Source of the DNA: Octopus sinensis
Taxonomy: Eukaryota
DNA length: 64,000 nucleotides
NCBI RefSeq assembly: GCF_006345805.1
Contig: NC_043002.1
Location: 96,658,001-96,722,000, forward strand
Reading direction: 5' to 3'
Translations under genes and position numbers: made by a program
Shown here: positions 55,617 through 55,863 of the stretch, in pieces
Layout: every line of letters begins with the position of its first letter
How positions within the stretch are numbered: the first letter of the stretch is position 1
Notes under the pieces: generated by a model
Seen by the model: only the letters and a program-made list of their open reading frames with translations
Databases searched by the model: none
What the model was told of the DNA's origin: nothing

Positions 55617-55725
55617 CTATCGCATTAAAAAAAAAGAAAAAATTCAAATATAAACCTTTGTTGATATTTTGATATTTCAACAAAGTAGTGAAGAGAGGAA
55701 ATGAAAGCTTTCTTTGTCAACTTAC

Positions 55726-55863
55726 ACACAGATAATACAATTATTTGCCATTGAATTACACCAATAAGCACGCAACTTTTCCAGGTGCAGATAGCTTCTT
55801 CCTTTACAAGCCATCTTTGTCCCTTTTTGCGACATTTATTCTCGTAGTAACATCCATGGCAAT
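55726..55863 (-). CDS. Gene C exon 3: DCHGCYYENKCRKKGQRWLVKEEAICTWKSCVLIGVIQWQIIVLSV
   Basis: Acceptor tttttatctag|AT, donor T|GTAAGT, 138 nt, phase 1-1. Lies inside ORF 55625..55888. Cys framework shared with 2229-2367. Confidence 0.75.

Follow-up and report, generated by a model that had tools for sequence, protein, structure and literature searches.

Support for positive selection on the cysteine-rich module exons of a secreted protein family in Octopus

Snake three-finger toxins and venom phospholipases A2 (PLA2) are reportedly encoded by tandem multigene families in which coding exons outpace introns, as described by Nakashima et al. and in related work. Conotoxin genes have a conserved signal and introns that are conserved within a superfamily; nonsynonymous (Dn) and synonymous (Ds) divergence are both raised in the mature exon, and selected sites are concentrated there (PMC3862624). 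Here we describe a gene of Octopus sinensis in the light of these systems. The window, which is the whole stretch of DNA analysed, comprises 64,000 nucleotides (nt) of contig NC_043002.1, and the segment of interest, 55617-55863 on the minus strand, consists of exon 3 and the start of intron 3 of a gene that we refer to as gene C. An initial annotation of this segment had compared gene C with a second copy, A, found that the exon diverges faster than the adjacent intron and proposed positive selection. Our comparisons support positive selection for the module exons of this gene family. The best explanation, to which we assign a probability of about 0.72, is recurrent diversifying selection on the disulfide-locked scaffold of a secreted protein encoded by a tandem cluster in Octopus.

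Gene C has four coding exons on the minus strand between 41761 and 60353, and its product is a secreted protein of 139 amino acids (aa) with 10 Cys residues after the signal peptide. The signal peptide is followed by two cysteine-rich modules, each encoded by one exon, and by a short tail, with about 113 residues in the mature protein. Both modules carry the motif C-x6-W-x7-C-x4-C. The parts of the gene, in the order of transcription, are listed here.

60275..60353, minus strand: exon 2, 79 nt, start codon at 60353-60351; encodes the signal peptide MIMTRLFLFCFLFLTAVTA and a short linker.
55726..55863, minus strand: exon 3, the subject of this report, 138 nt, phase 1 at both ends; encodes module 1, (D)CHGCYYENKCRKKGQRWLVKEEAICTWKSCVLIGVIQWQIIVLSV.
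55645..55725, minus strand: first 81 nt of intron 3, the 'conserved intron' of the initial annotation; begins with the GTAAGT donor.
55480..55725, minus strand: 5' part of intron 3, about 250 nt, with approximately 77-85% identity across four genes (A, C, and LOC128248056 and LOC128248175 of Octopus bimaculoides).
50665..55644, minus strand: rest of intron 3, containing mariner-like and other repeats; the whole intron, 50665-55725, is 5,061 nt long.
50517..50664, minus strand: exon 4, 148 nt; encodes module 2, CRKDNGSCIKRDATWVAIEDGVCWTHTCKYLGNRNVRITSKPSRSCLR; first seen in a six-frame pattern scan.
41761..41815, minus strand: exon 5, 55 nt; encodes the C-terminal tail (L)KRDLPIANRSQNETSLL and the TGA stop.

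Positions 55617..55644 are a T-rich part of intron 3. Exons 2 and 5 were placed by tblastn with residues 1-24 and the tail of family protein P0002 (79% and 83% identity, respectively), and exon 3 shares 67% identity with residues 25-72 of the same protein. The donor of exon 2 is in phase 1 (CCC G|GTAAGT), and exon 3 is bordered by the acceptor ctag|AT TGC and the donor T|GTAAGT. The exon 3 donor and the exon 4 acceptor join as T|AT, which forms the Tyr codon before Cys6 that is found in all family proteins. Gene C agrees with the family architecture in the phase of exon 3, which is 1 at both ends, and in this split Tyr/Phe codon. No signal exon lies within 500 nt upstream of exon 3; the real one is situated 4.4 kb upstream.

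From the labels A and C one would expect a further paralogue, B, represented by a cysteine-rich exon at 50.6 kb. A and C are indeed two copies, but B is not a third. In family proteins the order is signal, module 1, module 2 and tail, so that a single chain carries a module of each type, and the splice phases agree with this; we therefore assign the exon at 50.6 kb to gene C as its exon 4. The local annotation is corrected accordingly, and what seemed to be three paralogues is one complete gene and part of a second. Two further candidates were rejected. The start of intron 3 has a frame that is open for 33 codons in both A and C, yet nearly all differences in it would be nonsynonymous, and splicing occurs at T|GTAAGT in every gene of the family. 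A hidden 61-nt exon in the conserved part of intron 3 is not supported either, as conservation is uniform there and not exon-like. Rfam and tRNA scans gave no RNA genes in or near the 55617-55863 segment. None of the protein collections searched contains an exact or 90%-identity match to the gene C protein, and the gene, although complete, thus appears to be unannotated in the source genome.

Copy A is located about 30 kb downstream of gene C within the window, and the two copies align over approximately 1.4 kb around the exon at 66-70% identity. The exon used for comparison is the following.

2229..2367, minus strand: exon 3 of copy A, 139 nt, phase 0 start; encodes module 1, CYGHVCLTNDVCRYNGEEWLEKKFSTCTRKICTWVNGELAVNQLSL.

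The hand counts of the initial annotation are reproduced exactly. In the 27 codons from Cys2 to Cys5, A and C differ at 33 of 81 nt (12, 9 and 12 at the three codon positions) and at 16 of 27 residues, with no stops and with every Cys kept, while an ungapped comparison of the first 81 nt of intron 3 gives 15 differences. Over the whole exon, 58 of 135 aligned columns are mismatched, against 48 of 238 in the first 246 nt of intron 3 (Fisher p = 4.7e-6). The difference between the exon and the upstream intron, where 134 of 403 columns are mismatched, is marginal (p = 0.049), and 7.4% of noncoding 81-column windows between A and C match or exceed the divergence of the 81-nt exon window. Part of the contrast between A and C is therefore due to an unusually similar stretch, the 5' 250-300 nt of intron 3. 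This is also visible along the alignment, where identity is 56-59% in the exon, compared with 55-75% in the upstream intron and 75-88% over about 300 nt downstream. The ratio of nonsynonymous to synonymous divergence (dN/dS, or omega) in the 27-codon exon segment is 0.72, and omega > 1 does not follow from this segment on its own.

To place the gene in a family, a profile made from three exon peptides was searched exhaustively against 1.84 billion representative proteins. The search yielded seven small Octopus proteins of 93-154 aa, each with two copies of the motif (E = 1.7e-23 to P0002), and relatives in Octopus only; matches from other organisms are repetitive or low-complexity proteins and not relatives. 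A word-index protein search with the exon 3 peptide found nothing. The closest database protein is the O. bimaculoides "uncharacterized protein LOC128248056", which is also 139 aa long (E = 4.7e-59, 67% identity, 100% coverage). The family further includes LOC128248057, LOC128248060, LOC128248175 and LOC106872088 from O. bimaculoides together with LOC115212787 from O. sinensis, and all members are annotated as 'uncharacterized protein' only. The O. bimaculoides genes form a tandem cluster on chromosome CM046606.1 (106.92-107.28 Mb).

The locus of LOC128248056 (L001) is colinear with gene C, with about 90% noncoding identity near the exons, and its exon sizes of 79, 138, 148 and 55 nt equal those of gene C. 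We identify gene C as the orthologue of LOC128248056. The corresponding exons in L001 are listed here.

10001-10079 of L001: orthologous exon 2.
16253-16390 of L001: orthologous exon 3.
18175-18322 of L001: orthologous exon 4.

The layout of signal, module 1, module 2 and tail exons is common to six further gene models (loci L002-L006 among them), with variation in the tail exons, and seven family genes have intact open reading frames (ORFs) and canonical splice sites. The members also have in common the signal peptide and a 10-Cys/2-Trp scaffold. Across eight proteins that share 34-67% identity, all 10 Cys and the key Trp are invariant; the invariant positions are C37, W44, C52, C57, C74, C81, W88, C96, W97, C101 and C119. 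The tail is a more variable element. LOC128248060 (L003 18363-18514) has a stop inside exon 4 that overlaps the splice point of its paralogues, and it has no tail exon; in gene C, reading through the exon 4 donor leads to an immediate stop at 50515-50513. The tail may therefore be dispensable in the family. In the flanks of LOC128248175 (L002 1916-2146, 4953-5006 and 29301-29623), extra family pieces are found outside the listed gene calls, namely a remnant that resembles exon 4 but has in-frame stops, with a tail-like exon after it, and a signal-exon-like stretch further downstream. The cluster thus holds more copies and pseudogenes than the gene calls show.

The faster divergence of the exon is borne out beyond A and C. 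When A, C, LOC128248056 and LOC128248175 are compared two by two, each of the six pairs shows lower similarity in exon 3 than in either flank; in the orthologue pair, the exon is 80.4% identical and its flanks are 89-90% identical. In the same pair, identity is 86% for exon 2, 78.4% for exon 4, 91% for exon 5 and 89.1% for noncoding DNA (1,895 aligned nt, corresponding to a mismatch of 0.109). A significant excess of divergence over noncoding DNA is seen in exons 3 and 4 (p = 0.003 and p = 0.0002, respectively) but not in exons 2 and 5. Identity to the orthologue is 0.86 in the first 81 nt of intron 3. Introns of distant paralogues were left out of global alignment, in which shuffled 250-mers already reach 0.62 identity.

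The second element of the pattern, a conserved signal next to a hypervariable mature region, is found as well. Nucleotide identity across the family is 0.82 in the signal core, 0.62-0.64 in the modules and 0.50 in the linker before Cys1; between the orthologues it is 0.96 in the signal core and 0.78-0.81 in the modules. A side observation concerns the Cys codons. In exons 3 and 4 of the orthologue pair, four of approximately 12 synonymous differences are TGT/TGC changes in conserved Cys codons, an unexpectedly high share of small numbers.

We compared substitution rates in the mature modules of the orthologue pair with the noncoding mismatch of 0.109. The proportion of nonsynonymous sites that differ (pN) is 0.203 (46.4/228 sites; Fisher p = 8.9e-5), and the corresponding proportion of synonymous sites (pS) is 0.204 (11.6/57 sites; p = 0.02). 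The Nei-Gojobori estimates are dN = 0.237 and dS = 0.238, giving an omega of about 1. When the Cys and conserved Trp codons are removed, dN is 0.29, dS is 0.16 (0.157) and omega is 1.85. The nonsynonymous rate is thus about 2-fold higher than the intron rate, and about 2.5-fold higher without the scaffold codons. Pairwise omega of exon 3 ranges from 0.7 to 2.1 in the six pairs among A, C, LOC128248056 and LOC128248175.

The codon-model check proposed with the initial annotation was approximated by comparing site models M1a and M2a. We used our own likelihood program (GY94-type, F3x4 codon frequencies) with a neighbour-joining tree of 8 sequences and 119 codons. Model M0 gives omega = 1.51 (p = 0.0035 against omega = 1). 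The log likelihood (lnL) is -2347.06 for M1a and -2318.93 for M2a, and twice the difference (2dlnL) is 56.3 (p = 6e-13). M2a assigns 15% of sites to a class with omega = 0.05, which corresponds to the Cys/Trp scaffold, 48% to a neutral class and 37% to a class with omega = 3.9. The models thus recover a class with omega > 1. The statistic varies with the data and the codon frequencies as follows.

Copy A dropped: 2dlnL 48.2.
Mature region only: 2dlnL 37.2.
Exon 3 only: 2dlnL 14.6 (p = 7e-4).
Exon 4 only: 2dlnL 42.6.
F1x4 codon frequencies: 2dlnL 55.2.
Equal codon frequencies: 2dlnL 58.5.
Four closest exon 3 sequences: 2dlnL 16.3.

The maximum likelihood-ratio statistic in nine data sets simulated under the fitted M1a was 4.3. 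Numbered as in the window protein, the exon 3 residues that are candidates for selection are Y32, Y33, E34, L45, E48, E49, A50, W54, S56, V58, L59, I60 and S71. Positive selection, which the initial annotation had derived from the fixed Cys scaffold, the hypervariable exon and the slower introns, is thus supported both by the site models and by the comparison of the orthologue pair with noncoding DNA.

In the explanation that we favor, recurrent positive (diversifying) selection would act on surface and loop residues of the disulfide-locked scaffold. The Cys and Trp scaffold itself would be kept by strong purifying selection (about 15% of sites, omega ~0.05), and approximately a third of the sites would take replacements faster than neutral DNA changes (omega ~3.9). 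Tandem birth-and-death duplication would add to the diversification. By analogy, the protein most likely serves in binding or recognition outside the cell, and its partner, be it prey or predator, microbes or the other sex, is probably fast-changing.

The AlphaFold2 model of the orthologue is all beta, with a predicted local distance difference test (pLDDT) score of about 90 across both modules. In a Foldseek search of the PDB, the top 17 matches are pairs of fibronectin type I (FnI) modules, with E-values from 6.3e-4 to 0.3, a probability of ~1.0 and target-normalised template modelling (TM) scores of 0.42-0.58. An FnI module has four Cys with 1-3 and 2-4 disulfides, and a pair of such modules is a shape that binds extended peptides. 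The predicted fold resembles this arrangement; we nevertheless describe it as FnI-like and do not call it a member of the fn1 family, because there is no sequence-level match and the Cys spacing is different. The likeness may reflect convergence, or the modules may be related, though diverged, to the FnI-like subdomain of VWC domains. When the exon peptides and the full proteins of 8 members were scanned against Pfam at E <= 10, no family beyond noise emerged, and the candidate families pacifastin, VWC, beta-microseminoprotein and EB module are unsupported by these scans. For beta-microseminoprotein, there is no Pfam PSP94 match, and the C-x-x-C-x-C and C-C motifs are absent from the alignment. 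The sole VWC match is below threshold (E = 1.9, in one member), and the motifs C-x-x-C-x-C and C-C-x-x-C are likewise absent from the alignment.

Several points weigh against the combined reading of diversifying selection on an FnI-like scaffold. Plain pairwise dN/dS is close to 1 (1.0 in the orthologue mature modules and 0.7 in exon 3 alone), so omega > 1 is argued from the heterogeneity among sites and from the intron comparison. At synonymous sites, too, divergence is about twice the noncoding value, and a raised local mutation rate could contribute. The site models are our own implementation on a neighbour-joining topology, with deep paralogues (tree length of 6.2 substitutions per codon), and tests of this kind are known to be inflated by recombination among tandem paralogues. 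The orthologue comparison comprises one pair. As to the fold, the call is based on a prediction from a 5-sequence alignment, and there is no sequence-level match to a known domain, be it fn1, VWC or another, in Pfam or in a PDB sequence-profile search (both at E <= 10).

The alternative that survives best, though we regard it as unlikely, is a rise in the mutation rate focused on the module exons. Both types of change would then be raised, and purifying selection on the scaffold would complete the pattern without adaptive fixation. The pS excess noted above is in line with this, as is the ratio of dS to noncoding divergence, which is 2.0 and the same as that of dN. Conotoxin mature exons are also raised in both Dn and Ds (PMC3862624). 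However, the synonymous excess amounts to about 12 changes, 4 of which are Cys-codon wobble, and without the scaffold codons dS falls to about 1.3x the noncoding value while dN is 0.29. In addition, the signal and tail exons of the same gene are not accelerated, and a class with omega of ~3.9 is beyond the reach of a raised mutation rate alone.

Less probable still is that conversion among the tandem paralogues keeps the introns alike and that selection purges converted tracts from the exon. Between A and C, identity is 80% over the initial ~250 nt of intron 3 and 67% in the upstream intron (p = 4e-4), whereas between the orthologues both introns evolve equally fast (0.89-0.90 identity); moreover, distances between clades are compressed in the intron 3 segment. 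These observations fit homogenisation, but the exon has about twice the divergence of its flanks between species too, where conversion among paralogues cannot create intron similarity. A is about as near to C's orthologue (0.77 identity in intron 3) as to C (0.80). Since A is no nearer to the C of its own genome, any conversion would predate speciation. The longest identical run between A and C, 18 nt, is not unusual either (run-length permutation p = 0.24). Recent gene conversion, which the initial annotation had named as a possible source of the intron similarity, therefore does not explain the contrast between exon and intron. The 5' part of intron 3 is under no visible constraint, since it evolves at an ordinary intron rate between the orthologues (0.86-0.93 identity). 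The similarity of A and C in intron 3 may in part reflect old homogenisation of paralogues or rate heterogeneity, which would exaggerate the contrast between these two copies.

The least likely alternative, relaxed constraint or pseudogene decay, by which the exon would drift neutrally and the introns look conserved only by comparison, could draw on the pairwise dN/dS near 1, the even spread of differences over codon positions (12/9/12 between A and C, 23/19/16 between the orthologues), the frameshifted signal exon of copy A and the degenerate exon-4-like remnant in the L002 flank, but the family as a whole already contradicts it: drift cannot lift dN beyond the divergence of noncoding DNA, the scaffold of Cys and Trp does not vary among the eight proteins, seven genes are intact, and M2a fits well above M1a even when copy A is left out.

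Recurrent diversifying selection on the module exons remains our preferred explanation. A broader proposal is possible, and we put it forward tentatively: the proteins may represent a new secreted class of two FnI-like modules engaged in a fast co-evolving interaction (in saliva or venom, mucosal immunity, or gamete or chemical recognition), shaped by diversifying selection and perhaps also by an exon-focused rise in mutation rate. FnI domains are regarded as a chordate feature; if the proposal is true, the fold would also exist in a non-chordate, whether through convergence or through a very distant relationship, and its confirmation would bear on the distribution of this module. Exons that outpace their own introns are rare and mark genes in arms races or recognition systems. 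Proteins of cephalopod venom, immunity and reproduction are poorly characterised, and the present result provides a gene cluster, a two-module 10-Cys scaffold and candidate selected residues. In a literature search, no paper was found that names these loci or treats this octopus family. What is new here is thus an unstudied family, so far seen only in Octopus; its mode of evolution is already known.

Copy A differs from the intact copies in its signal exon.

11036..11112, minus strand: signal exon of copy A, with the conserved ATG at 11106 and a TGA at 11079-11077 after 9 codons.

This exon contains a one-base frameshift when compared with the intact copies. An assembly error is conceivable, since the shift lies within a short homopolymer run. 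Two splice sites of copy A are displaced, the donor of exon 2 by 1 nt and the acceptor of exon 3 by 2 nt downstream, with the result that exactly one codon is lost, the junction stays in frame and the phase changes from 1 to 0. As this compensated shift keeps the frame, it suggests that copy A remained functional for a while after diverging. Exon 4 of copy A is expected beyond the window start.

The window is AT-rich (GC content ~0.35) and contains many reverse-transcriptase and mariner-like ORFs, copies similar to short interspersed elements (SINEs), and microsatellites. Its repeats share 94-96% identity with their counterparts at the O. sinensis locus and 87-90% with those of O. bimaculoides, which hints at an origin on the O. 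sinensis/vulgaris side. Fragments of mariner-like transposases are found at 1334-1887 and 54118-54962, at 51698-52063 on the plus strand and at 60614-61036 on the minus strand. A and C have one such fragment in common, in corresponding places downstream of exon 3, and the insertion is therefore older than the A/C duplication; in copy C the fragment is partly duplicated (54605-54681 and 54886-54962). Intron 2 of gene C contains an imperfect (AAT)n/(AAC)n microsatellite of about 300 nt at 56240-56550, immediately upstream of the region alignable with copy A. ORFs of the reverse-transcriptase type, as in long interspersed elements (LINEs), are present on the minus strand at 3838-6141, where one interrupts intron 2 of copy A, and at 21052-22161 and 35671-36654. 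A tRNA match at 61493-61565 on the minus strand (31.4 bits in Rfam, just over threshold; no call by ARAGORN) is probably a tRNA-derived SINE head, and related SINE-like copies are found at 9718-10090, 57542-57726 and 61004-61127. The window further contains a tandem duplication at 23691-24667 (~485 nt, 95.5% identity) and a pair of inverted repeats, 19151-19344 and 20350-20544 (195 nt, 98% identity), which are about 1 kb apart.

Compared with the FnI pairs of human fibronectin found in the fold search (8-9FnI, 4-5FnI and 2-3FnI), the octopus modules are alike in being all beta, in their length of ~45 residues, in having about four Cys and a conserved aromatic residue, and in occupying their own exon each. 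They differ in Cys spacing, with C-x4-C (C-x5/6-C-x14-C-x4-C) in place of the C-x-C of FnI, and in Cys number: the 10 Cys found here, as opposed to 8 in two FnI modules, imply an extra disulfide.

The initial annotation had likened the locus to conotoxin and three-finger toxin genes. This likeness holds for the mode of evolution and not for homology, as there is no Pfam toxin or Ly6 match and the fold search returned FnI pairs; neither Pfam (E <= 10) nor the Foldseek search of the PDB gave any sequence or fold similarity to conotoxins. Snake three-finger toxins and PLA2 share with the octopus genes the faster exons and the tandem family, but their fold and Cys pattern are different. In comparison with conotoxins, the octopus protein is larger (~113 mature residues, 10 Cys, two modules) and lacks an obvious long propeptide, and its Cys codons do change synonymously. 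As in conotoxin superfamilies, the signal is conserved, the mature region is hypervariable on a fixed Cys framework, and the introns are large and evolve more slowly than the mature exon; Dn and Ds are both raised in the mature exons of the orthologue pair, and the selected sites are concentrated there.

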